A stretch of 63,984 nucleotides of DNA, the filler included, from Octopus bimaculoides (Eukaryota), in the NCBI RefSeq assembly GCF_001194135.2. It is 4 parts of 4 records of this genome, joined end to end, with 100 filler letters (N's around TTAATTAATTAA, not from the genome) between each part and the next. Parts side by side here need not be neighbours in the genome. Positions count along the whole stretch, not along the records: positions 1 to 15,281 come from NC_068991.1; 3 more parts are not named here. One strand, written 5' to 3'. Of the stretch, positions 1 through 15,281 are shown one piece after another (positions within the stretch are counted from its first letter, which is position 1; each line of letters starts with the position of its first letter). The notes under the pieces are model-generated. The model did no database searches. It was not told where the DNA came from and worked only from the letters and a program-made list of their open reading frames with translations. The translations under genes were made by a program, and so were the position numbers.

Positions 1-39
<39 letters not shown>

Positions 40-1134
40 GTTTAATAATATGAATGGATGCAATGCAAGCTGAAACTAAAGGAACATAATTAATAACCAC
101 ACACAAAATCCAAAATATATGTATATTCTTCTACATTAATAAAATCGATATAAAAATTGCAAATATATAAATATAAAAATATGAAGATACATATAAATGG
201 ATAAATATCGATATGATGCATAAAACACAGAGAATTTTAGATTTAAAAGTTACAATACATTGGTGTAATAAGAATTTGATACGATAAAACATTAAAAAGA
301 CGTACTAAAATACCACGAAAATATTACAAAGATTCAAAAGTCCCATCTACGGGAAGTTTCAGAGACGCGCCAAGTAATATGAAATATTTCATATTTTTAA
401 AAACTGACACTCCCCTCATCAAGATGTTCACACATAATGCAAAAAAAAAAATACAAATACAGAAATACAAATTGTACAATTACATACCAGCCATTCGTAA
501 AATTAAGACATTGCGATTACCACCTTTATAGTTATCTAATATCACCTCATTATATATATATACACACACACACNNNNNNNNNNNNNNNNNNNNNNNNNNN
601 NNNNNNNNNNNNNNNNNNNNNNNNNNNNNNNNNNNNNNNNNNNNNNNNNNNNNNNNNNNNNNNNNNNNNNNNNNNNNNNNNNNNNNNNNNNNNNNNNNNN
701 NNNNNNNNNNNNNNNNNNNNNNNNNNNNNNNNNNNNNNNNNNNNNNNNNNNNNNNNNNNNNNNNNNNNNNNNNNNNNNNNNNNNNNNNNNNNNNNNNNNN
801 NNNNNNNNNNNNNNNNNNNNNNNNNNNNNNNNNNNNNNNNNNNNNNNNNNNNNNNNNNNNNNNNNNNNNNNNNNNNNNNNNNNNNNNNNNNNNNNNNNNN
901 NNNNNNNNNNNNNNNNNNNNNNNNNNNNNNNNNNNNNNNNNNNNNNNNNNNNNNNNNNNNNNNNNNNNNNNNNNNNNNNNNNNNNNNNNNNNNNNNNNNN
1001 NNNNNNNNNNNNNNNNNNNNNNNNNNNNNNNNNNNNNNNNNNNNNNNNNNNNNNNNNNNNNNNNNNNNNNNNNNNNNNNNNNNNNNNNNNNNNNNNNNNN
1101 NNNNNNNNNNNNNNNNNNNATATATTAGTATTAC

Positions 1135-1281
1135 CTGAAGTTTTTGAGAGAGAACATGTCTTTTCTGTGCATAGAATATCTCCACTGGGCTTGCAAGTGC
1201 ACTGATTGCATTTATCAATGGCTATGAATGTTTGCCCAATTATGTATACTTTTCCATTGTAGTGGCATTCTACTTTTGTTA
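1135..1281 (-). CDS. Internal 147-nt phase 1-1 exon encoding a 6-Cys VWC N-lobe/pacifastin-like module (xTKVECHYNGKVYIIGQTFIAIDKCNQCTCKPSGDILCTEKTCSLSKTS)
   Basis: Acceptor ttttctttcag at 1282-1292 and donor gtaata at 1129-1134. Open frame with C-x-Y-x-G-x2-Y-x2-G-x2-F...D-x-C-N-x-C-x-C-x3-G-x3-C-T-x3-C spacing. Confidence 0.85.
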
Positions 1282-1499
1282 CTGAAAGAAAAGATAATGT
1301 ATACGAATTCAAGATGAAAATGAAATTTCCTCACTCAAAGAATATAACAACAAATATTTTGATCAGCTCAGTTTTACACATACAGAAATACACATAAACA
1401 CAAACTCACGTATGCACAAATATATATACTTTATTTGTGTATTAAGACTCCCATTGATTTCATGTTAAGAAATATCTGAAGCCGTTAGGGATAGGTTAA

Positions 1500-2330
1500 G
1501 GAAAATTTTCTGCTTAATATTTAGCCAATGAAATCTAAGAACTACAATTTTACTAACCTTAAAGAAGTCAATTTTCTAGATATTAACATGCACAGGCAAA
1601 TTTAAACCCTGTGACAAAGCAAATGTGGAAGCCTCATATATAGACATAGGCTCTAAACAACCACCACCAATCAGTAAATAATTAGTTAATAGAATTAGCA
1701 ATCGTGTCTTCAGTCTATCCGCTGATAAAGCTACTTTTGAATAGGCCACTCCATACTATAATGCAGCATTAGAAAACTCTAACTTTAAGAATAATATAAA
1801 CTATATTGAACCAATTGCAAATAGACCAAGAAGATGCAGGCAGAAAAAATCATATGGTTCAATCCACCTTATAGTATTTATATAGCCACTAACATAGCTA
1901 GGAAATTCTTAAAACTAATAGAAATCACTTCCCATACTCCCACAAATTCCACAGGTCTTCAATAGAAACAGTGTTAAAGTTAGCTATAGTTGCCTCCCCA
2001 ATGTAGGTTCAATAATATTCAATCACAATAAAAATAATTCCACCAGGAATACCCTGAAAGACATTGTAATTATAAATCTCCGAAGCACTGTCCTCTAAAT
2101 AAATACTGTGTGGAAAAAGAAGTTGTATACAAGGCCAAAATCATGGACCTCAACGTAGTAACAAAAGCATATATCGGAATGACGGGCAACTCGTTCAAGA
2201 AATGATACAGCATCTGGTGTCATTCAGGGTCAAAAATAGAAGACTCCCAACGTCCCTATTCAATTTTATATGGACATTGAAAAAAGGAATAAGCAACCCC
2301 CAGATCATATGGAGCTTGCTTGTTAAAGCA
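1500..2330 (+). mobile_element. Penelope-like element (PLE) fragment: RT C-terminus, thumb and GIY-YIG endonuclease, frameshifted
   Basis: Manual translation gives EVNFLDI, IWFNPPYS, NRNSVKVSYSCLPNVGSII, and CPLNKYCVEKEVVYKAKI...AYIGMTGNSFK (GIY-YIG). Confidence 0.8.
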
Positions 2331-2839
2331 GAAAAAAACAGGGGGTGGTGCACCAAATACCCAACCACTTAAACGTTATTTCAGAAGCAGGATATTCACA
2401 TAATCGAACAAGTGAATCCTCATCGTTGAACGATGGAGACCCAACACACACACACGCACACACTCACACACTCACACACACACACCGACTGATACACATA
2501 CACAAATACACAGAGTAACACACACACACTACACACATCACATACACACGCTCACACACACCTACACTCACACACGTACTCACGTCCCACTTCATATCGC
2601 AAAATCAACGGCCAACTGGTATGGATAGATCTATACAAGTAGTTGCCACACAAAAAATAATAATTGTAGGTGCGTTTCAGTTCCCACTTTCCGGTCTTTA
2701 ACAGCGAACAAACTAAGTGAAACAGAGCTAGTGATTGACATATTGACATTTAACCAAAATAAAATAGTGGTAGATGTCGGGGATAAGAGCATAATCAATA
2801 ATCAATGAAATTTGTTTGAAAAGTGTCTTTCAATATTAC

Positions 2840-2986
2840 CTGTAGTTTTTGAGAGAGGACACACCTTCTCGCTGCACACAACAGCTCCAGTGGACTTGCA
2901 AGTGCACCGATTGCATTTATCTATGGCTAAGAATATTTGCCCAATTAAGTATACTTTTCCGTAGTAGCGGCATTCTAATTTAGTTA
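2840..2986 (-). CDS. Second paralogous 147-nt phase 1-1 VWC/pacifastin-like exon (xTKLECRYYGKVYLIGQIFLAIDKCNRCTCKSTGAVVCSEKVCPLSKTT)
   Basis: Acceptor ttttattttcag at 2987 onward and donor gtaata at 2834-2839. Same length, phase and Cys spacing as 1135-1281, and the upstream intron sequence is also homologous. Confidence 0.85.
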
Positions 2987-3143
2987 CTGAAAATAAAAAA
3001 GTTGTGTACGAATTCAAGATGAAATTGAAACTTTCTCACTGAAAAAATATTACGACCAAAAGTTGATGAGCTCAGCCTTACACATATACAAATACATGAA
3101 TACACATAGACACTCGCACATACACATCTGAAAACAAGAACCT

Positions 3144-3189
<46 letters not shown>

Positions 3190-3379
3190 ACAGTGATCGA
3201 AATTTAGATGTAAATTAAAAATATTCTTAACTCAGTCCGGTGTGTCTACGAGCATCCAAAAGAAGAGACACACTGTATATATACAGATATAGATTTATAT
3301 ACACAAGGTACCCCAAAGTAACTGGAAACTGTCTTTCTCTTGGCAGGTAACCATATACCTCCTCAATAGCAAGACAACT

Positions 3380-3680
3380 GTTTCTCCCTCTCTGTTCTTC
3401 TGTCACACTCTAATCTTTCCTCATCTAATACCAAATCACCTCCTCTAATACCCCCACCCTCTCAAAATTCCTTGTCTTGTAAGTTACTTGATGACACGGC
3501 AGGCGCTGGCGCCACGTAAAAAGCATTCAGTCCACACTATGAAGCGGTTGCCAAAACTAACCTCGCCTGTGCTGGTGCCATGTAAAAAACACTTAGTGTA
3601 CTCTGTGTGGTGGTTGGTGTTAGGAAGGGCATCCAGATGTAAAAACCATGCCAAACAGAACAGTAGCCTTGTGTAGTCGT
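3380..3680 (+). mobile_element. RTE-LINE 3'-UTR-type interspersed repeat
   Basis: Shares motifs (cttgtcttg..agttacttg, gctggtgcca.gtaaaaa.cac, ggttggtgttaggaagggcatccag) with the 3' ends of the RTE copies at about 50.9-51.1 kb (+) and 56.6-56.9 kb (-). Confidence 0.65.
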
Positions 3681-3799
3681 CTACACCCCGCTTAAAAGTT
3701 AAGAACAAAATTCTTGACCATTTCTGTGAACACATCACGATTTACTCATATGAACACATACACAGCCCAAAATACAAGCCAAACTTCAGCAAAAAAATA

Positions 3800-4870
3800 A
3801 TGGGTTGAGCTGAACAGATTAAAGGATGATAAAACAATAACAATCAAAGAAGCTGATAATGGGAGTGCAGTAGTCTTAATGGACATGCAATATTATATAA
3901 CTCTAGTGCTATCCATATTAGAAGACACAACATACTATGAAAAAGGCCCAACACTACAGTCAGCGGAAAATAATGAGCAGCATAAAAACTCTGATAAACC
4001 TATACAGAGGACTCACCGTCAAAGAACACGACTGTATTACTAACTTCAAAAGAAAATCCAGTCAATTTTACGGTATTCCTAAGATACACAAAAGTGAGAA
4101 AATAAGTAACGCATGTAGGAGTGCCACAGATATAATAGTCAGGGTACTCCCACCCAATGACCTCAAATTAAGACCTATAACAGCAGACCCCGCATGCAAA
4201 ACTTACCGTCTCAGCAACATTTTAGATACCCTCTTAAATCCATTCCTCAAGCATATTAAAAACAATTAGTAAAAAACCCTACTAGTATCCTTTGATGTAG
4301 TCAACCTGTACTCTAATATCCCCCCCATAACCAAGGAATAGAGGCAATCCAGTTCTGGTTAGAGAATTAATCCAATGAACTCCCACAGCACATCAAAAAA
4401 CAATTCATAATAGAAAGGCTAAAATTCATCTTCAAGAATAACTTTTTCGTATTAGTGATAAGTTCTATCTACAAAATCGGGGACTGCGATGGGTACGAGA
4501 ATGGCCCCTTCCTTTGCTAACCTGAAATCACTCTTTATCATAAGGAATATAGCCATCAACAACTTCCTTTCCTCGACATCCTCATAAACAAATCCAACAG
4601 CAAAATAGAAACAGACATATACTATAAGCCCGCGGATTCTAAGTAATATCAACCGCTCAACTCATGCTACCCCGGACACATTAGAATGACTATCTCTTTC
4701 AACCTGGCCTAAAGAATTTGCAATATAGTATCGGATACTAGCACTGGGGACACTCGACTACATGAGCTAAAGGATACACTCATCAGCAGGAATTACTCAC
4801 TATCACTAATTGATATAGGTTTTCAACGTACCCTACAACTCAACGTCCACGAACTCAAACATCCCAAACC
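3800..4870 (+). mobile_element. Penelope-like element reverse transcriptase pseudogene
   Basis: TIKEADNGSAVVLMD, FYGIPKIHK, LRPIT, VSFDVVNLYSNIP, GTAMGTRMAPSFANL, LPFLDIL and ETDIYYKP are PLE RT motifs, with several frameshifts. Confidence 0.88.
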
Positions 4871-5415
4871 AAAGAATGAATGACAACTAAAAACCCTACC
4901 ATAACTAACCATTACAAAATGTATTTCATGATAAAATTATTTTAACATTTTAAACGGCAAGATGTAGCATTTAATTATGATTCTAATCGTAATTATGCGT
5001 CTTAAAAAAATGTCTCTCTGTGAAAAGTGTGGTGCTATGAAGTGGGACAAGGAATCATTAGGTAAGTGTTGTTCTAAAGGTAAAGTCCATTTACCAATGA
5101 TTCAGCCTCCAGAACTTGTAAAACATCTTTTGGGTACCACTTCAGGATCAATATANNNNNNNNNNNNNNNNNNNNNNNNNNNNNNNNNNNNNNNNNNNNN
5201 NNNNNNNNNNNNNNNNNNNNNNNNNNNNNNNNNNNNNNNNNNNNNNNNNNNNNNATATATATGCGTGTGTTTGTGCGTGCATGTGTGTGTGTATATACTT
5301 CTCCACTTTCTGTTTTAAATACCAAATATTACGATTCGGCAAATAAAGTTTTTCAAAATTGCAATTGCATATCACTTTTTTGTCCTGCTTAATTTTAAAG
5401 TTTTTATTATTTTAG

Positions 5416-6971
5416 GATGAAGAACACAAGCATAGGTGCTGAGCCAGTGACTAAACTGGTCAATTTGGCATGTTCATGGATAACAGACCGTTCGGCTCTG
5501 TAAAACCTTACATATTCCTGAGAAATAGACTGAATCATACCAACTCTAGATTTCCGCGAGATATACAATATCTTATGTTTTCTGTTGATAAAAACCGATA
5601 AGAGAGGTATTGAATCCGGTATATATGCCATTATGAAGACCACTAAAGACAACGGCATGGTTTAAAAGGCGGCTTGATGATAATGACAGGCAACTAGAGA
5701 GCAGCTGGAATATGATAATCAATGTCCGTGGTTCCAAGCAATTTTGGGCTAGAAAATGTTCAGACTTGATGGCTATGAACGAAAATTATGGCCCGGCCCA
5801 CTTGTTCCTAACTTTGTCTTGTGCAGAGTACTTTAGGCTGGATCTGCGTGAATTTTTGGAAAAGCTGAACGCAGATATACCAAACGCTACTACAAAGCGC
5901 ACCAATGAACTGTGTGCTGATGACGTAGTGGCTGTTAGTGAGTATTTTCACCCTCGATTTGCTACCTTTATGAGAGAGGTCATAAGACACAAAAACAGTC
6001 CTTTCAGTCTGGTCGAGCACTTCTTTTGGAGATTGGAATACCAGATGAGAAGTGCACCACACGTTCACATGAAATTGTGGATTAAAGATGGCTCGGTTAT
6101 GGCTAGAGACGACAAGAGTACGATTCAGACTTTTATACAGTCCATGATCACTTGTCGTCTTCCGTCGAATGGGGAAAGTTCAGTTTTGTCGGACTTGGTT
6201 TCGCGTTTTCAACAACATGTCTGTAGTGGATCCTGCAGAAAACTTATTTATTCAAACAGTCGATTTTACACCCGATGCAGATTTGGATTTCCACGTCCTG
6301 TTAGAAATTTCCGTTTGCTTAGTGTAGACGACAGTATAAAGTCAGAACTGTCAAGAAACTTTTCAAACTTGACAGACGACAGGGGGAAGAGTCCATTAAT
6401 GACTATAACCCTCTTGTTCTGTATGTCTGGAAGGCGAATGTCGATATACAGTACATTGGTGAAGATAGCATGATTCTAAAGCGATATGTTACTAGTTATC
6501 AGACAAAGTCCGGAAAGAGTGACACTGAAGGCATTTCGGCTGAGATTGACAAATCCAAGTCTATTTATTCAAAGTATGAGAGTGTCAGACTTCAGTTGAT
6601 GAGCAAGTGTGAAACAAGCGCCTATGAAGCTGCTGACAAACTAACTGCTTGGCCACCACTTCTATGGGTGTTCTGAAAGCGTTATTTGGATTGGAGCAGA
6701 CTTGCCCAGTTACCGATCGCATAGGTTCAAACCTCAGTATGAACTGGACCAACTGGAGCCGGACTCCACCGATGTTTATTATGAGAACATGGTGGAAAAT
6801 CGGTATCCAAGCAGACCCGATTCGATAGAGCACATGAATTTGTATGAGATTGCAAGTAAATATGAACACGTGCGTCCAAACAAAGCCAGACATGCTAATG
6901 AACAAATGCAGTTGAGAAAAAAATCTTGGCTATTTCCGTTCTGTCGAAGAGCGAATTGTAAAGTCGCCAAA
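5416..6971 (+). pseudogene. Helitron Rep (HUH endonuclease) domain, frameshifted
   Basis: Motif 1 GPAHLFLTLSCAEY, motif 2 FWRLEYQMRSAPHVHMKLW (HUH), and INDYNPLVLYVWKANVDIQYIGED...RYVTSYQTK (motif 3, YxxxY), then SAYEAADKL. Confidence 0.88.
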
Positions 6972-6979
6972 CATTAGAT

Positions 6980-9874
6980 CAGTGTTTCCCAAACTTTTCG
7001 CCCACCGCCCACTGATACAACCCACCCTACTAACACTAAATCTTCTAGGAGAATCCCCCCTTGTATCATTTGACACACACACTATATCGTAGACTCGTTG
7101 GCTGGTTAGTGCTGTTTGGACTAAATATGCGGTTGTTTACAAAACTCTTTTGTGGGTTTAGTTTTGCCATTAGTGTGAATAAAATTCTAACGTTTACTCT
7201 ATATTATGCAGACAGACTAACTTTGGTAAAGTTGCGCTTTCTTTTACACTGATTTTTATCTTCCCCAAATGAACCCTTGATCAGAACTACCGATGCAAAA
7301 ATAATTAATGATTGTATTATAGGAGGAAAAGAACAGAACTTTTTAATGAGAACCATGTTTCTGGTGCAATGCAGCTAGTGCAGATACATTCGGTTTCAAA
7401 CTTGTCAACTTTAGCCGCAAGTTTCCTCGTTCTGTCACATCCAGTCCAATTCTTTTATGGGAAAGTAAAGTTCCAACATGGCTAAAACCAGTTTCAACCA
7501 GGTACGAGGTAGGGAAGGCACGCAAAAGTAATTTCAGATGTTTCCCCAGATTGGGGTAAGAATTCAATATACTTTGTAGCTATCACAAACCTTTGCCATT
7601 TCGGCGATATCGCATTGTGGTGTCATTGTCAATTTGTAATTTTATCAATTCCTCCTGAATGTCGCCGTCGCAACTGACTGCATCGAACTCAAGCGGATTG
7701 ATATACCAATTTGGAATATTCAGTGCAATGATATCTTGAAATCGTTCCACCATGTCATCGTGCAATGGTTGTAAATAGTTGCGATATGTAGTTAAATCAA
7801 CCAATTCATCTTTCAAAGAGTCAAGTTCTGGAAATTAATGGAACTGACATTTTGAAATGTTAGTCATATACAACACCAATTTCGAAATGAAGGTAGTGAT
7901 AAAAGATTTACAGTCAACGAGAGATTTTGTATTCTTGCAATAACTTATTCAAATGATTTAATTTTGCGAATATATCACAAAGAAAAAAGATATCGCACCT
8001 TGCAGCCATCAATGAAGTGGATAGTGGAGTATCTTCAAAGAAAGATATGATTATATGAAACAGTTCAACAAAGCTTAAAACACAGTTTCCTTTTGACAGC
8101 CACCGCACTTCGGTATGGTATAAGGATTTAGTATAGTCCTCATCATTTCTCAGACAGAGTTGACGGAAAATTCGTTCAGACAAGGGACTGAACTTCAATT
8201 TGCTCACAGTCTTGATAACTAACTGTAGCACATCATTCAATCTGCCGTTCATATTTTTTGCAACTAAATGCTGACGGTGTGCCAAGCAATGAATAGTTAA
8301 TATCTGGTGGGAAATTTTACGTTTTAGGAGAGATGAAAAAACCTCTGTATCTTCCTATCAACGAAAGGGGCTCCACCAGACGCACAGGCAAGAATATTAC
8401 TGAGTGGGATATTATGTTTAAAAAGGTAAGACTTGAGAGTGTGAAAAATAGTTGCGCCTTTTGAATCAAGCAGTAATTTCACTGTGAACAGCATTTCCTC
8501 ATACGGTTGAAGGTTTTGGCTGAAATACCGAACACATACCATCATCAAACATTGATTCTCCACAACAATTGACTCATCCACTTGTATAGAAATTTCAGAA
8601 CGCAGGATAATACTAATAAGATAATGTTTTGACATCGTTGGTCATTTAATCGATACGTCGAGAAATCATGCTATCGGGTTTTTCGTGTATAACTAGGCGA
8701 AATATTGTTTTTCCAATTGTATGAGACTTTCCAGACTTAGCAACAAGCAATGCAATATTGTACGATGCAATCAACCCGTCATTCTTCTGCTTACTAGTTT
8801 TCTGGAGTAGCGTGCTGAATGTTTGTGTTTGCTTTTTGAAAGAGGCGCTCAGTTGCAAAAATTAGGACAACGGCAGGTCCTTTTTGCCCGAATGCTTTGC
8901 ATCAAAGTGATACTTCAAGCGTGAAGGTTTCATTGCTTCGTTGGTCAATGTTGGTCAAAGAAAGCACATTGGTAACTGATAGTTCTGAGGAGAGGGAATA
9001 TATCCAAACGATAAATAATCACTGCTGTACTGTCGACAAATTTTCTCGACTGGAGACATTAGAAAAGTAAAAATGTGAAAACGAATTTCTACGGACGGCG
9101 TCCGAAAGGCAGTATGATATTCCCAAAGTGAAGTCGATAGAGTCAGGCGACACGTCTTTACTGGAACAAATACGGATCTAGTTCATTTGGCTGCCAGCAT
9201 TTCAAAAATTAAAGCTTATCGAAAATTTTAAAATCTGGTACATTAATATATCTTTCCAAGCTAAATTGCTGGAGTTATTCAACTTCTTTCAGAAAAATGT
9301 CTTTGAAAAGTTATAGAGGTTTAAAGTTTGATCATTTTCACCCAGTCAAGAAACACGACTTCAAAGCTGTCATTTTGAGCGTGACTGCACATTTTGTTAG
9401 CATCCCGAAAATAGCACTTGTGTTTTGATATGTAACCGTAGAATTACGCACGACGTATAACCCCTCATTACTTTTTTATTTGTCAGAGTTTTCAGAAATT
9501 TTTTGCGAATTTGTATTCTACATGTGGGGCTTCATACGATTATGCACTCCCCCAAAAGCGCGATTTAAGGCCTAGACTTATTTGGCTGCTATTTTTAGCA
9601 TATATGACGACCATCTCAATGCTATTTTTAGCATATATGATGATCATCTGAATGAAAAGTCCGCTTTTTTAATACAAACGAACGTCTCATGCAAGTAGTC
9701 AAATCGATAAAAGTTCATCTTTATTCTAGATATAAGTAAATGCAGACTTGATTTCTAAAAATTCTTTGTCACCCACAAAATGTTCACATCGCTCACCATT
9801 TTCTAGAAATTTGCCCATCGTCCACCTGTAAGTTACCCACCGGTGAGCGATATCGCCCACTTTGGGAAGCTATG
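6980..9874 (-). mobile_element. Full-length hAT transposon of the Buster/Charlie group with 8-bp TSD CATTAGAT
   Basis: Imperfect TIRs CAGTGTTTCCCAAACT (6980 onward) and reverse-complement CATAGCTTCCCAAAGT (ending 9874). Identical flanking 8-mer at 6972-6979 and 9875-9882 with central TA, the Buster nnnTAnnn target. Confidence 0.93.
7343..9059 (-). pseudogene. Buster-type (SCAND3/ZBED8-like) transposase, frameshifted
   Basis: MSPVEKICRQYSSDYLSFGY...NEAMKPSRLKYHFDAKH (BED-like), SIQVDES, HRQHLVAK, LYHTEVRWLSKGN, C-terminal FPTSYLVETGFS...GNLRLKLTSLKPNV. Confidence 0.9.
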
Positions 9875-9882
9875 CATTAGAT

Positions 9883-11661
9883 TGACCACGGATACTTTGG
9901 AGTGTTATTACCACAATCTGCTCATGCTCTTCAAGCCTTGGCGTGACGCATAAAAAGACTTTCTTGGAGGTTGCAAGTCCTGTGATCAGTATGCCAACGA
10001 TTTATTTGAAATTGTCAGGTTCCAGAATGTGTACAAACGTATAGAAGATGCGCTGAAACATGGCAAAAATATTCAAAGTGAATCTCAGACTGATCTCAAT
10101 GATGACTATTCTGGTGGTGATCATATGGAAGCTTTGGCAGATGAAGATGTTGTCAACCTGTCTCGTACGAGAAATATCACTGAGGAAGCACTGAGCCATA
10201 AAGAAAGCCAACTGAATGACGTGCAAAGAAAAATTTATAATGATATTGTGGTCGGTATTGAGAACCAAAACAATCACCGGGACAACAACAAACCTTATCC
10301 GCGATGTCATTGTGATGACTGCACAAGTTTTGAAATTTGTTTCTGGTGGTGGTGGCACGGGCAAAAGAATTTTGATAAATGTATTGGCTGATAAAATTCA
10401 GTACATGTACCCAAATGACAATGGTCCGAGTGTAGTGATATCAGCACCAACAGGAATGGTCGCTTTCCAACTAAACGGAACGACTGTTCATCGATTGCTA
10501 AAACTCAAAGGGCAGCACGGCAAAACTCTCGTGTATGAGGAACTATCGAAAGACCATCTAAAACTGTTTCAGGTGATGCTTCAGTATGTGAGACTGATTA
10601 TAATCGATGGTCAGTCACTTGCAGCTGGCTTTTATTCACTTGAGATTGCGCCAACTGTTTGAATCTACACAGCACAGTTCGCCTTTCGGACACATAAACG
10701 TGGCTGTCTTTGGTGATTTGTTTCAATTACCACCTGTTAGAGGAAAACCGATGTTTAAAAGAATCAGACACCACGGTGCCCAAAGAGCGTGCTTTGGCAT
10801 TAGCAGCCACCACTTGTGGAGATTCTTTGACTATGACGAGTTGACAGTTAACATGCATCAGAAAGACGATACGGAGAATTATGTTAATATGTTCGACCGA
10901 ATAAGATTGGGTTCACCGCTTGACTCTGACATCCAAATTCTTAATGAGCATAGAATTGAACTGAAAGCTTCTCTCGAACGGGTTGCTTACAAAATGTGTG
11001 AGCTGACTCAGACAACTGATTTGAGTATCGTTTATATTATGCCTCTGAACGATTCGGTATCGGAGTTATGCTCGAGAAACTTGGCATTAGTATTGTCGAG
11101 ATTGCAGGTGTTGATTCCAGCATGCGGCAAACCAAAGGTAAAAAAAAAAGAAAACTAAAAGCAAGAAGTTGACCACCAAGTCGGAAAAAAAAGACGTCTG
11201 ATACTGCTGACCTTGAAACCGTCTTTAAAGTTGGCATTAATGCTCGAGTTCTGATTAAGCGCGACATGGACGTGGACAGCAGTTTGTTTAACGATGCGAT
11301 GGGAACTGTCAAGAGACTCATCTACGAATTTGGAAAGATTACTGCCGTTGACGTTCTCTTTAATAGTTTAAATAAAATCTTTTCCATCAAAACTGTCAAA
11401 GTCGATTACGAATTGTCACCTGGTGTGTTCATCACTAGAGATCAATTTCCCTTGTGTATTGCATATGCAATTTCTATCCACAAATTACAGGGAATACGCG
11501 TCGATGGTGTCATTGTTGATTTGGGTACCGGCGTTTTCTCCGACGGTATGGCTTATGTATCTTTGTGCAGAACGCGCAAACTGTGCAACGTTCGCTTGAT
11601 TGATCCTGATCCATCGAATTTGATTATGTACGATTCCTGCACTTGGAAAGAATACAACTGA
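9883..11661 (+). pseudogene. Helitron Rep-helicase linker and PIF1-family helicase, frameshifted
   Basis: YYHNLLMLFKPWRD, QLNDVQRKIY, Walker A SGGGGTGK (about 10345), SAPTGMVAFQLNGTTVHRLL, LIIID, PFGHINVAVFGDLFQLPPV, QFPLCIAYAISIHKLQG, GMAYVSLCRTR. Confidence 0.92.
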
Positions 11662-11829
11662 GAGAGTGCATTAATATGGAGCCACTTCCATTGTGCAATG
11701 TGAAGCCTAAAATTATTAAACTGGCTAAAAAGGCGACTATGAAGATTAAAGTTGCCATTAATATGGACAGTGAAATCATCAACTTGCCGAAATAAAAAAA
11801 AAAAGGCTAGATTTGACAACACGGTTGCA

Positions 11830-12662
11830 AAGCTGTACATCTCGCTGATCAACGAGAGAAACGTATGTTTTGTGAACAGCACGATACAGGTTATCCGCCA
11901 GCTGCCTTTGTTGGCGAAATACATGCAGTCGAGTAGTGATATTGTCATTCGTGAAATTCACGATATTATTTCTTCATCTGGAAATAAATCGGTAACCAAC
12001 TTGAGAAATATTATCGGCGGCAGGTTTAACGATGGTACTCGGAAGTACATTTATCATTTGCTGCCTGAAAATGTTCAACAAATGTTCATGTTTGAGGAGA
12101 ATACATTGCTCTGGTGCACTAGAAAACAAGGCCATTTGCCCCAAATTACACAATAATGAGTGTGATTGTGCATCGACCAACTGCTGTGGAAATTCTATGA
12201 ATACGACCGACGTTAAGTCTGATCTGACGTCGCATCCTATTAGTGGTCAGCAACAGTTTAAGAGCTTGCTCAAAAATGAGGTTTCGATTATCAGGAGGTG
12301 CAGTCTGTGTGACAGTGACATCGAGCACACTGGTATAGTGAGCCATGTCTTCCCGAACACTGCATTACCTGGTTGTTAATTTGAACAGATTCAAATATAT
12401 AGACAATCAGATGGTCAGGATTAATTCGGAGTTAATGAATTATTCTTTGAATAAGCAGAATATTTACGGCCAGAGATTCCGATTAATCGGCTCAGTGTTG
12501 CACTCGTTGGCTAGTGTGGACTCCGGTCACTACACCAGCATCGTTCGCAACCAGGACAAATGGGACATCATTGACAACGATGCCGTCGTTTCCAAGCAAT
12601 ATATAGCTTTCCCGTCTAAACTGCTTAACAACTATCTGTTGTTCTTGGAAAAATTAAATTAA
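11830..12662 (+). pseudogene. Ubiquitin-specific protease (peptidase C19/USP) catalytic domain at the 3' end of the Helitron ORF, frameshifted
   Basis: Cys box LINERNVCFVNSTIQVI (Cys codon 11866-11868), CSLC zinc-finger half, LVVNLNRFKY (LxIHLKRF-like), His box FRLIGSVLHSLASVDSGHYTSIV (His 12528-12530), KWDIIDND (12573-12581), and terminal YLLFLEK-stop. Confidence 0.8.
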
Positions 12663-13197
12663 ATTGAATTGAAATGAAATTAATTTTCATGGCCGATATA
12701 AAGCAACAAGCATTATTTAATGAATGACTTGCCTGACGGTCAGACGGGAAATGTGACAGAGGTGGTGAGATATAACTTTTTCTCTATATAAAGCGCTTTA
12801 TTTGAATATCTTAAGCGCATTTCTGAATTTATTAGGATAATATGAATCTGGTCCCGCCATTGAGATACATTATCTCAGTGGTTAATGACTGCCATTTTTT
12901 TACTTTTGGGAGGTTGTGGGTCGGACTTGCAGCTTCTAAAGCGATTTTCGTTATAATCTGGGAAAGTCATGTCACTCGACCAGATTCTTGTAACCGTTTT
13001 ATCTCTCCGTTTGATAATTAACAAATACAACAATTATTATCGATTTTATCGTACATTTTTTAATATTTTGACAGTCACACTATTTCAATTGGTCGGCGTT
13101 CGGGTGTCAGTTTATTAGAGGCTGTCGCACCATTAGGAGAAATACGATACATAAATAAAATATTACAAGCGTTTCCTTAAAAAGTACGAAACTAGAA

Positions 13198-14040
13198 TTG
13201 AAAAATGGACACGTTCAAAAGGGAAGAGAGGTGATATGCCCCCTATATGAGTTCACACAGCCACAGCAAGAGAAAGTACAAGCAGAGGAGGAAAACATTG
13301 TAGACCACACTGAAGAAATGAAAGAGAGACAGAAGTGTGAAACAGAGAAAACAAAGGCGAAGAACGAAAATGGAGCTACTAACCCTAAAAAGCGAAAGAA
13401 AAATAAGTCAAAGGAACGGTCAACAGAAAACAAAAAAGAGATAGAAAAGCCAGGAACTAATAATGTACAAGAAGAGGAGAGAACGGATAAAGATGTCAAA
13501 TACAAGGGGGTTTTGATAAAGTACGAGAAGAGCGAGCAGATGGAGAGAAAAGTCGCGAAGATGCCGGAGAAATGTGCTGAGAAATGCATTTTGATACATG
13601 AGGACGACTACTGGGAGTACATAAAAGAACTTGGTGAAAATATAACAACGAAACGAGTATGATTGGTGGAGACACCACCCCTTAGAACTGATTATTTGCA
13701 GTTGATAAGGACGGAAGTAACAGTGGTTAATGGGAGAAAAGTAACGCGATTGTTTCAACTTTTTGAGTTGCAAAACCGTTAAAATGTCTACATGATGTTG
13801 AACGTAAAAGTGAAAAACTGGATAAATGTAACCACCCGATTTCGGGGGTTGAGTGGACATTGCGCCTCATTTTTCCATTCTTGCATATTATCATTTTATT
13901 TTAATTTTTCTTCTACTATTATCATTCGCTTTTGTAATTTTTAGTTCCCCGATTTTATGTTTGTTGTGTTTTGTACCGTCTTTATGTTTTGTGATGTCTT
14001 AAAAATTCTTTGTACAGCCCTTTTTGGGTAATAAAGAAAT
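13198..14040 (+). mobile_element. Probable 5'-truncated L1/Tx1-related non-autonomous retroelement (K/E-rich ORF1 tail plus T-rich 3' UTR and AATAAA)
   Basis: Low-complexity K/E-rich frame resembling the ORF1 tails at 27.6 and 32.1 kb, followed by a pyrimidine-rich UTR ending in taataaagaaa (about 14030). No ORF2 motifs seen. Confidence 0.35.
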
Positions 14041-14651
14041 CGGTATTTCGTCTGTGTACAAATTCTAATGTCATCTTTACGCAGTGGTTCAATCTATGAA
14101 TGATAATTTTTATAAATTTACAAGTAGTCAATCAAATATAATTCAGTAATAATTTGTTTAAATCGCATAATATGTGTATCATAATGCGAATTATCTTTCC
14201 TTATAATTATTTCGGTTTCGTACTTTTACTGTTATATAGATTCGACTTCATCATAAATCCAGTTTTTTTTTATTATCACGGTAATTTGCATGCAGTGATA
14301 AATACGTTTTTTTATATACTTTGGTATGAAGAGTATTATAATGAATTTACTTATTCGAAGTTAAAGATGATATTTTGTACATTTTCAAATATTTATATTA
14401 AGAACTCGGTTTAATAATTATCGTGACATCGTAATTCACACGAGTTACTTTTCATTTTAAGATGCCACAGAATGTACAACATATAGGGATTCCAATATTT
14501 TTGAGCAACAATGCTAGTCTCAAACTGTTTAAGGTTTGTCATGACAGACTGCAACCCATTTGAGCGTGCGTATTTTTCAAATCTAGTATATATATATATG
14601 TGTGTATGTGTATGTGTGCGTGTGTGTGTGTATGTGTGTGTGTGTGTGTGT

Positions 14652-14699
<48 letters not shown>

Positions 14700-15281
14700 A
14701 ATTATTTATGACTCCTTCCATCTCATCCAAGCCAACATCCTGTTCTCAGTTCTATATCATTTTATCTCTTTTTTTTTTGCTACTTTATTCCAATTTTGCT
14801 AAATCTTATTTATATGTGTATCTAACTTTATTATTCTTATTTTTACTTTTATTACTCTTGTTTTTACTTCTATTACTTTTTGTTTTAATTTTTACTTTTT
14901 ATTTTTTACCTTTTATCTTTTCTTTGTCTCTTATACATGCTAGTTAAAAATGAACTCAATCCAATCTATTTAACATTCACTCTATGCTGAATAGTGGTAC
15001 AGTATGGGGAGATTTTTGAAATCCAACGAACCTTTATACAAATATACCTTTTCAAAGGGATGTGATAAACTTATTATAATGGGTAATACTACGTGTACTT
15101 TTTCTTTTGTGATGTAATCTTTGGACTAAATTTTTTTGGGGCTGAGGAGAGCTTTACACCATCCTTTATATCAATAATATACCTATGCTGATGTAATAAC
15201 AGATTGTTTATAAAGCTTGAAACACGTGTACCACGATATCCTTTGTGTTCTGTTTTTAATTTATGTTTGATATATATATAT

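Follow-up and report, generated by a model that had tools for sequence, protein, structure and literature searches.

Helitrons move by a rolling-circle mechanism in which the Rep domain of the transposase nicks the element and its helicase domain unwinds it, as established for Helraiser. The closest described relatives of the element reported here are Helentrons with OTU or VTD domains and the UCH-carrying subgroups of Helitron-like elements of the HLE2 group. Erven et al. (2022) reported that the VTD domains of Helentrons are active deubiquitinases and deneddylases preferring K48 and K63 chains, that OTU domains occur beside or instead of VTD in Helentrons, and that these transposons benefit from deubiquitination, a task that enzymes of more than one class can perform (PMC9741609). 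In their HELIANO study, Li, Gilbert, Peng and Pollet (Nucleic Acids Research, 2024) counted UCH, the Pfam domain of ubiquitin-specific proteases (USPs; peptidase family C19), as one of 20 further Pfam domains that are “stably included” in elements of the Helitron type. In that survey UCH occurs almost solely in HLE2, with enrichment in its subgroups c and d, whose members come mainly from lungfish and axolotl (PMC11417382). The domains named as sharing an open reading frame (ORF) with Rep and helicase (RepHel) are DUF6570, Herpes_Helicase, Herpes_teg_N, and UvrD_C_2, with the others placed in different ORFs (PMC11417382). Here we analyse a plus-strand Helitron-like element from Octopus bimaculoides (RefSeq assembly GCF_001194135.2) that carries a USP domain next to its helicase. 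It lies on NC_068991.1, which supplies positions 1 to 15,281 of the window, the whole analysed stretch of 63,984 nucleotides (four parts of four records, filler included).

It is very probable that this locus is a dead HLE2 copy from a lineage in which Rep, helicase, and USP form a single polypeptide. Co-occurrence of UCH with Helitrons is already catalogued but uncharacterised: a full-text literature search for Helitrons or Helentrons together with USP-type deubiquitinases found no paper on the USP domain itself, and an octopus repeat annotation of 2026 gives Helitron counts with no mention of a USP domain. The first-pass annotation of this DNA had proposed an undescribed system, a claim that does not stand beside the catalogued UCH of HLE2 (PMC11417382) and the published OTU and VTD deubiquitinases of Helentrons (PMC9741609). 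What is new here is the fusion within one ORF, the conservation of the active site, a wider set of hosts (octopus and nematode), and a variant that combines Rep, helicase, endonuclease, and USP; a detail of the published catalogue is also corrected, and intact sequences suited to biochemistry are identified. At the window itself, which holds a fossil transposon copy, the significance is small.

A USP domain adjoins the helicase of a probable HLE2 element in octopus

Three-frame translation of the window revealed a USP domain that adjoins helicase motif VI via a basic linker, all on the plus strand and with only ~45 codons between the end of the helicase and the USP (Table 1). The linker, which begins RECINMEPLPLCNVKPKIIKLAKKATMKIKV, is read over 11661–11792 in a frame other than that of the helicase and is followed by a poly-A run; two indels have put it out of frame, namely the loss of 4 bp at 11659 and the gain of 4 bp in the poly-A run at 11794. 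The USP contains the Cys box LINERNVCFVNSTIQ (catalytic Cys codon TGT at 11866–11868), the second zinc-binding CxxC within RRCSLCD, followed by VVNLNRF, the His box SGHY (CAC codon at 12528–12530), and KWDIIDND at 12561–12581, which includes the Asp box at 12573–12581. Its C-terminus, NNYLLFLEKLN, is followed by a TAA stop at 12660–12662.

Stitched across its frames, the 287-aa USP matches Pfam UCH (PF00443) over profile positions 3–238 of 254 with 45.6 bits (E=9.1e-12; gathering cut-off, 23.9 bits), and because of this score we regard the resemblance as real and far beyond chance. Two of the three separate ORF pieces also match UCH alone (ORFs 11752–12156 and 12345–12662; E=5.5e-7 and 4.6e-4, respectively). 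The window domain therefore combines a UCH score above the gathering cut-off with a Cys box and a His box. A complete catalytic core in an open frame, including QQDAxEF, is lacking in the window copy and present in its relatives.

Most of what the first-pass annotation reported at this junction was confirmed. Every motif it quoted (AYVSLCRTR...KEYN, the Cys box, CSLC, LNRF, GHY, IDND, and YLLF-stop) is in the sequence, and Pfam matches to Helitron_like_N, PIF1, and UCH all lie on the same strand. The USP is colinear with uninterrupted ORFs of relatives, so that no introns are needed, and G+C content stays at ~0.40 across 5500–12500, in keeping with the statement that USP and element share one composition. 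Two points required revision. Within the annotated interval 11640–12662, the USP proper covers 11797–12662 and the end of the helicase and the linker occupy 11640–11796; and the lesions, described as being only of the frameshift type, comprise four frameshifting indels and, besides these, an in-frame 21-bp deletion of the QQDAxEF box.

Upstream of the junction, the ORF at 5712–6473 matches Helitron_like_N (E=2.4e-21, with the alignment beginning at profile position 87) and contains the HUH motif HVH at 6060; the Rep signature FFWRLEYQMRSAPHVH is also present in the window. PIF1 is matched by ORFs 10216–10662 and 10607–11158 (1.4e-7 and 1.2e-5), and UvrD_C_2 with motif VI falls in 11266–11661. 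In blastx alignments, the Rep region is colinear with residues 858–1267 of the full-length relative P0015 (35–43% identity, two frame changes) and the helicase region with its residues 1312–1906 (three frame changes). Overall, the window is colinear with the full-length relatives P0015, P0037, and P0045 from Rep to the last residue at 35–47% identity, and the sole break is a nested insertion. An HUH Rep and, C-terminal to it on the same strand, a PIF1-family SF1 helicase are therefore both present. The interval 5455–13190 is very probably a dead, 5′-truncated copy of an HLE2 Helitron-like element with a nested insertion.

At least five further frame changes lie upstream of the junction, bringing the total in the window copy to at least nine. 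The ~800 N-terminal residues of the relatives, which include DUF6570, are absent, and a relaxed blastx search 5′ of 5455 gave no match to relatives, weak matches reaching back only to ~5455. A 99-N assembly gap as the hiding place of the missing N-terminus was considered and rejected as improbable, since the second octopus copy has a TG/CG microsatellite without coding sequence at that place. The window copy is a fossil, unable to make any protein, because of its frame changes, the stop after the helicase, the loss of QQDAxEF, the 2.9-kb transposon inside it, and the missing N-terminal third.

The fusion predates the decay of the octopus copies

A second copy (L001) was found on O. bimaculoides chromosome CM046601.1. 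Its gene model, P0001, is 75% identical in protein sequence to the window USP and runs in one frame from MAYVALSRARKL (MAYVALSRAR) via the linker into the USP. The two loci share 90% DNA identity over 11540–12720, and an unbroken blastn alignment pairs window 11443–13223 with L001 9896–11703 at 85%. Relative to L001, the window has lost 4 bp at 11659, which gives the TGA after the helicase, gained four A at 11794, lost 21 bp in frame at 12039, which removes the QQ(C/D)AH(D/E)F box, and lost 2 bp each at 12129 and 12361. L001 has lesions of its own, namely a 9-bp deletion in the Cys box, a 2-bp deletion near the end, and an internal deletion equivalent to window ~5330–11440. Since the two copies have none of these lesions in common and P0001 is in one frame, the ancestor had one ORF over the junction, and the helicase–USP fusion is ancestral to the octopus copies.

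The homology common to both loci covers window 5019–14587, starting inside a short zinc-finger-like ORF and ending at the right end of an element that resembles a miniature inverted-repeat transposable element (MITE). The zinc-finger ORF segment 5019–5154 is 87% identical to L001 9652–9790, the homology begins abruptly at 5019 in both loci, and a TG microsatellite follows the ORF fragment in both. This fragment (MSLCEKCGAMKWDKESLGKCCSKGKVHLP) is unlike any N-terminus among the full-length Rep–helicase–USP relatives; we take its motif to recall the N-terminal zinc finger of canonical (HLE1) Helitrons, and whether it is part of the USP-bearing element is uncertain.

The fusion recurs in divergent single-ORF relatives

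Word-indexed protein searches were too insensitive and returned few family members, whether the query was the stitched USP, the helicase end plus USP, or a family profile of 16 sequences. The search with the helicase end plus USP did recover P0002, an intact 394-residue ORF in which helicase motif VI (GMIYVALSRAK), a linker, and a USP follow one another, encoded on two read-archive contigs (L002 and L003) that are 99.7% identical to one another. P0002 contains NDFVSCYANS, QQDAHEF, SGHY, and W.HIND, and its end, YLLFLQKL-stop, resembles the YLLFLEKLN-stop of the window.

An exhaustive search of 1.84 billion cluster representatives with a profile built from P0002 and P0001 identified ~25 representatives, mutually <50% identical, that match from the end of the helicase to the end of the USP in a single stretch. 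The match ends 0–13 residues from the protein C-terminus in all 21 representatives checked locally, and all eight long proteins scanned (1,749–2,746 aa) have the Pfam order DUF6570, Helitron_like_N, PIF1, and UCH. Helicase and USP are separated in the relatives by linkers of ~60–130 residues, Lys/Arg-rich in most members and without a stop. The Rep–helicase–USP polyprotein that had been proposed for this rolling-circle, Helitron-type element is thus upheld by P0001, which is in frame across the junction, and by the eight full-length proteins, and the combination of PIF1 with UCH that the first-pass annotation had singled out occurs in all eight. The hosts known by name are O. bimaculoides and Caenorhabditis auriculariae.

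One relative departs from this architecture. Positions 25–4915 of L004 (marine metagenome scaffold ERZ23486228 ATLA15-1) encode P0164, with Rep, helicase, Exo_endo_phos, and UCH in one frame that is broken only by a scaffold gap; the RGSPH motif is of the Helentron type, and the USP, which looks canonical, comes last (UCH, E=1.9e-36). Endonuclease and USP can therefore coexist in one element.

The top USP-only matches of the profile search include vertebrate gene models with 3–10 tandem USP domains (among them P0017, P0020, P0022, P0024, and P0042), from Cuculus canorus, Columba, the fishes Pempheris and Antennarius (“ubl carboxyl-terminal hydrolase 18-like”), and Thomomys bottae. The scores of these models are inflated by the repetition of the domain.

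The USP active site is conserved and a USP fold is predicted

Conservation was assessed in an alignment of 26 sequences, comprising P0001 and 25 family members that are ~21–30% identical to P0002. The catalytic Cys is kept in 25/26 (the exception being the decayed octopus P0001), the catalytic His in 26/26, and the Asp of the Asp box in 24/26, while the third catalytic position varies between D, N, and S. The first Gln of the QQD box is present in 25 of the 27 rows obtained when the window copy is included. Three Cys positions of the zinc ribbon are occupied in 26/26, 26/26, and 25/26 sequences.

An AlphaFold2 model of P0002, computed from the family alignment, has a predicted local distance difference test (pLDDT) score of ~90 over the USP and <50 over linker residues 72–119, and the P0002 linker is predicted to be disordered. 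Foldseek comparison of the model with the PDB returned USP35, USP2, USP12/46, USP21, USP30, and USP36 (E ~1e-17; target-normalised TM-score 0.6–0.7), and a sequence profile hit USP12 among PDB chains at 2e-28. The fingers–palm–thumb fold of USPs is accordingly seen in the model of P0002, which is a relative and not the window copy. Because the linker is Lys/Arg-rich in most members, it may hold a nuclear localisation signal.

Relation to known systems

DUF6570 N-terminal to Rep has been proposed as a marker of HLE2 (PMC11417382), and Thomas et al. (2014) gave (F/Y)(W/L/Y/K)R, immediately ahead of motif 2, as the Rep signature of Helentrons (PMC4067079). The window Rep reads HFFWRLEYQMRSAPHVH at this point and its relatives YFWRVEYQ, YAWRIEYQ, and YYWRLEYQ. 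Pfam searches for Exo_endo_phos, the AP (apurinic/apyrimidinic) endonuclease domain, gave no match in any window ORF or in the eight full-length relatives. The window element is therefore most probably an HLE2 of the endonuclease-less kind, with a USP where Helentrons have an endonuclease. That the USP replaces the endonuclease, as first suggested, holds for the window and these eight relatives and fails for P0164, which has both in one ORF.

The UCH-carrying HLE2 subgroups c and d (PMC11417382) resemble the present family in their Helitron_like_N and PIF1 RepHel, with DUF6570 in the relatives, in the conserved position of UCH downstream of RepHel, and in the lack of an AP endonuclease from most members. 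They differ in that the published evidence is Pfam co-occurrence only, whereas here the domain is fused in frame to the C-terminus of the helicase, and in their hosts, mostly lungfish and axolotl there, octopus and C. auriculariae here.

Helentrons with OTU or VTD (PMC4067079, PMC9741609) belong to the same rolling-circle branch, with which the window shares the F/Y-W-R signature (FFWRLEYQ). They likewise carry a cysteine-protease deubiquitinase in or beside the transposase, with the same proposed protection of transposition proteins from a ubiquitin-dependent fate. Unlike theirs, the fold here is USP/C19, the domain sits at the extreme C-terminus, and the window element has no endonuclease. 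The RGSPH motif of Helentrons is RSAPH in the window and RGAPH in its relatives, while L004/P0164 combines RGSPH, endonuclease, and USP. Canonical Helitrons (HLE1, e.g. Helraiser) have in common with the window element the HUH Rep, the PIF1 helicase, and the rolling-circle mechanism, but HLE1 elements lack DUF6570 and UCH (PMC11417382); of HLE1-like features the window has only the orphan zinc-finger fragment (4977–5154), which may come from another element.

Cellular USPs (USP12/46, USP2, USP21, USP35, and USP8) share with the Helitron USP the Cys, QQD, His, and Asp boxes, a four-cysteine zinc ribbon, and the predicted fold. Identity to them is only ~14–20%, however, and the Helitron USP is minimal (~270 aa), attached to a transposase, and devoid of accessory UBL, DUSP, and ZnF-UBP modules. 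No particular cellular USP stands out as its donor.

Alternative explanations and a possible role of the USP

Of the competing explanations, the one that survives best treats the USP as a catalytically silent ubiquitin-binding module that brings the transposase to chromatin or PCNA bearing ubiquitin. Insects have VTD copies that are inactive (PMC9741609), and the D/N/S variation at the third catalytic position could be read in the same way. However, the Cys, the His, the adjacent Asp, and the QQD box of the oxyanion region are nearly invariant in the family, and pseudo-enzymes usually lose these; we consider a silent module improbable. Either D or N at the third catalytic position is ordinary for active USPs such as USP2 and USP7.

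A second explanation accepts the USP as part of the element but assigns it to a separate downstream gene or ORF, with the apparent fusion arising from ORF calling or decay. It would agree with the placement of UCH outside the four domains that share the RepHel ORF (PMC11417382), with the TGA after the helicase in the window, and with the many database matches that are USP-only proteins of ~280–310 aa. However, the TGA stems from the 4-bp deletion that is absent from L001, and P0001, P0002, and 21 other representatives read motif VI and USP in one uninterrupted translation (eight of these proteins span Rep to USP), across linkers that are short and free of stops. On the strength of the single-ORF relatives and the comparison with L001, we reject a separate USP gene for this lineage as very improbable. 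A fragment or retrocopy of a host gene, captured once or merely adjacent and unrelated to the transposase, was a fair suspicion given that Helitrons are known to capture host gene fragments (PMC11417382) and that the first protein search gave only one close homologue, but its probability is close to nil and it is ruled out by recurrence of the whole junction (motif VI, EYNRLR, basic linker, USP, C-terminus) in ~25 clusters, including the eight full-length RepHel proteins, while the second octopus copy is in frame over the junction and catalytic residues are kept across sequences of 21–30% identity, which is unexpected for dead cargo.

Several points weigh against our reading of the locus as a dead copy from a lineage with a fused and functional USP. 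The text of the HELIANO study implies a UCH ORF separate from RepHel, in disagreement with the fusion seen here (PMC11417382). DUF6570, the proposed HLE2 marker, is found in 8/8 full-length relatives and is missing from the window copy through truncation. Comparison of the window with L001 as two octopus copies places the boundaries of the shared region at 5019 and 14587, unlike the ends of a Helitron, and the two loci may have arisen by duplication of one composite region that was damaged beforehand, and not by independent transpositions; because the boundary pattern fits composite duplication at least as well, the octopus pair is weaker evidence than the cross-species family. Most relatives are metagenome or read-archive contigs, so that the host range is poorly known. 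Finally, our inference of USP activity and of its role in the family draws on conserved residues and on the VTD analogy.

In this lineage, the transposase is one polypeptide composed of a DUF6570 N-terminal region, an HUH Rep, a PIF1-type 5′–3′ helicase, a linker, and a USP, in which the short, basic, disordered linker directly after motif VI tethers a compact zinc-ribbon USP at the C-terminus. After translation and nuclear import, Rep would nick and the helicase would unwind, and the tethered USP would remove ubiquitin locally; in an intact element, the USP would be an active isopeptidase delivered in cis with Rep and helicase. Candidate targets would be the transposase itself, whose proteasomal turnover would be prevented, or chromatin or replication factors at the site of transposition, and the modifier removed could be ubiquitin or a ubiquitin-like protein. 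The effect would be to shield the targets from degradation or signalling, which mirrors the role proposed for OTU and VTD in other HLE2 lineages. Judging from the conserved residues and the VTD parallel, we lean slightly towards an active deubiquitinase that promotes transposition; the individual substrates that have been put forward (the transposase itself, PCNA, H2A/H2B, or components of host defence) are speculation.

A stronger version, which we consider doubtful, would make the USP an integral and catalytically required transposase module, encoded in the same ORF, of an old and widespread HLE2 lineage (molluscs, nematodes, vertebrates, and marine protists or animals), and a third deubiquitinase fold recruited independently alongside OTU and VTD. 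If this were true, removal of ubiquitin from the transposase, or from PCNA or histones at the donor or target site, would be a general need of HLE2 rolling-circle transposition. HLE2 elements carry three unrelated deubiquitinase folds (OTU, VTD, and USP), of which only VTD has been assayed, and a helicase-fused USP whose catalytic and zinc-binding residues are kept over very divergent hosts provides a testable case for ubiquitin removal in transposition or host evasion.

Other features of the locus

Features of the element and of the sequences nested in it or next to it are collected in Table 1.

Table 1 Features at and around the Rep–helicase–USP element, in window coordinates.
Feature	Position	Strand	Evidence
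Short ORF fragment with zinc-finger-like motif CxxC...CCxxGKV (MSLCEKCGAMKWDKESLGKCCSKGKVHLP)	4977..5154	+	ORF list
Assembly gap of 99 N inside a TG/TA microsatellite	5156..5254	.	
Rep (HUH endonuclease) region, decayed	5455..6979	+	Pfam Helitron_like_N
Nested terminal-inverted-repeat DNA transposon, 2,895 bp, between Rep and helicase	6980..9874	-	Target-site duplication, inverted ends
Post-Rep region and PIF1-type helicase motifs I–VI, decayed	9883..11661	+	Pfam, blastx
Helicase motif VI, GMAYVSLCRTR...WKEYN (GMAYVSLCRTRKL...WKEYN)	ends 11658, then TGA 11659-11661	+	
Basic linker from helicase to USP, RECINMEPLPLCNVKPKIIKLAKKATMKIKVAINMDSEIINLPK plus poly-A/Lys run	11661..11796	+	
USP (peptidase C19) pseudogene in three frames	11797-12135, 12137-12343, 12345-12662	+	Pfam UCH
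3′ non-coding region after the USP stop, common to the second octopus copy	12663..13190	+	blastn
MITE-like terminal-inverted-repeat element, ends CTAGAATTGAAAAATG... / ...CATTTTTCAAATCTAG (...CAAATCTAG)	13191..14587	.	Inverted repeat 13191-13223 / 14555-14587

A search for the 3′ end of the element gave no convincing terminal hairpin, and a palindrome considered in L001 proved to be just a TA microsatellite. In L002 and L003, a 121-bp direct repeat lies 3′ of the USP stop, with two units that are 81% identical and 380 bp apart (L002 2289–2409 and 2669–2789); it could be part of the 3′ terminal structure of that relative's element.

A perfect 8-bp target-site duplication, CATTAGAT at 6972–6979 and 9875–9882, borders the transposon nested between Rep and helicase; the window has this sequence at these two breakpoints and nowhere else. 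The transposon has imperfect inverted ends (CAGTGTTTCCCAAA / TTTGGGAAGCTATG) and decayed minus-strand ORFs at 7343–8858, and its stitched ORFs gave no match to Pfam or PDB sequences. From the 8-bp duplication alone it is probably of the hAT type; its C-terminal ORF also looks hAT-like to us.

The arms of the MITE-like element are 127 bp long and 95% complementary in L001 (11671–11797 and 12642–12768), while of the left arm the window keeps only 33 bp, as ~870 bp of unrelated sequence (13224–14091) truncates it. This unrelated sequence holds a Lys/Glu-rich 154-aa ORF (13198–13662) that has no Pfam match.

Further upstream of the Helitron, a plus-strand ORF of 110 aa at 3937–4269 contains the motif FYGIPKIHK and has no Pfam match; it may be what is left of the polymerase of a retroelement. 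On the minus strand, two short ORFs or exons that are paralogous (1139–1312 and 2802–3017; MNSYT..FLSVTK.EC.Y.GKVY.IGQ.F.AIDKCN.CTC...), the first of which is cut by a 546-N gap at 574–1119, match Pfam Pacifastin_I (~2e-7) and VWC (~1e-5), and they look like tandem-duplicated exons of a gene for a small cysteine-rich secreted protein.

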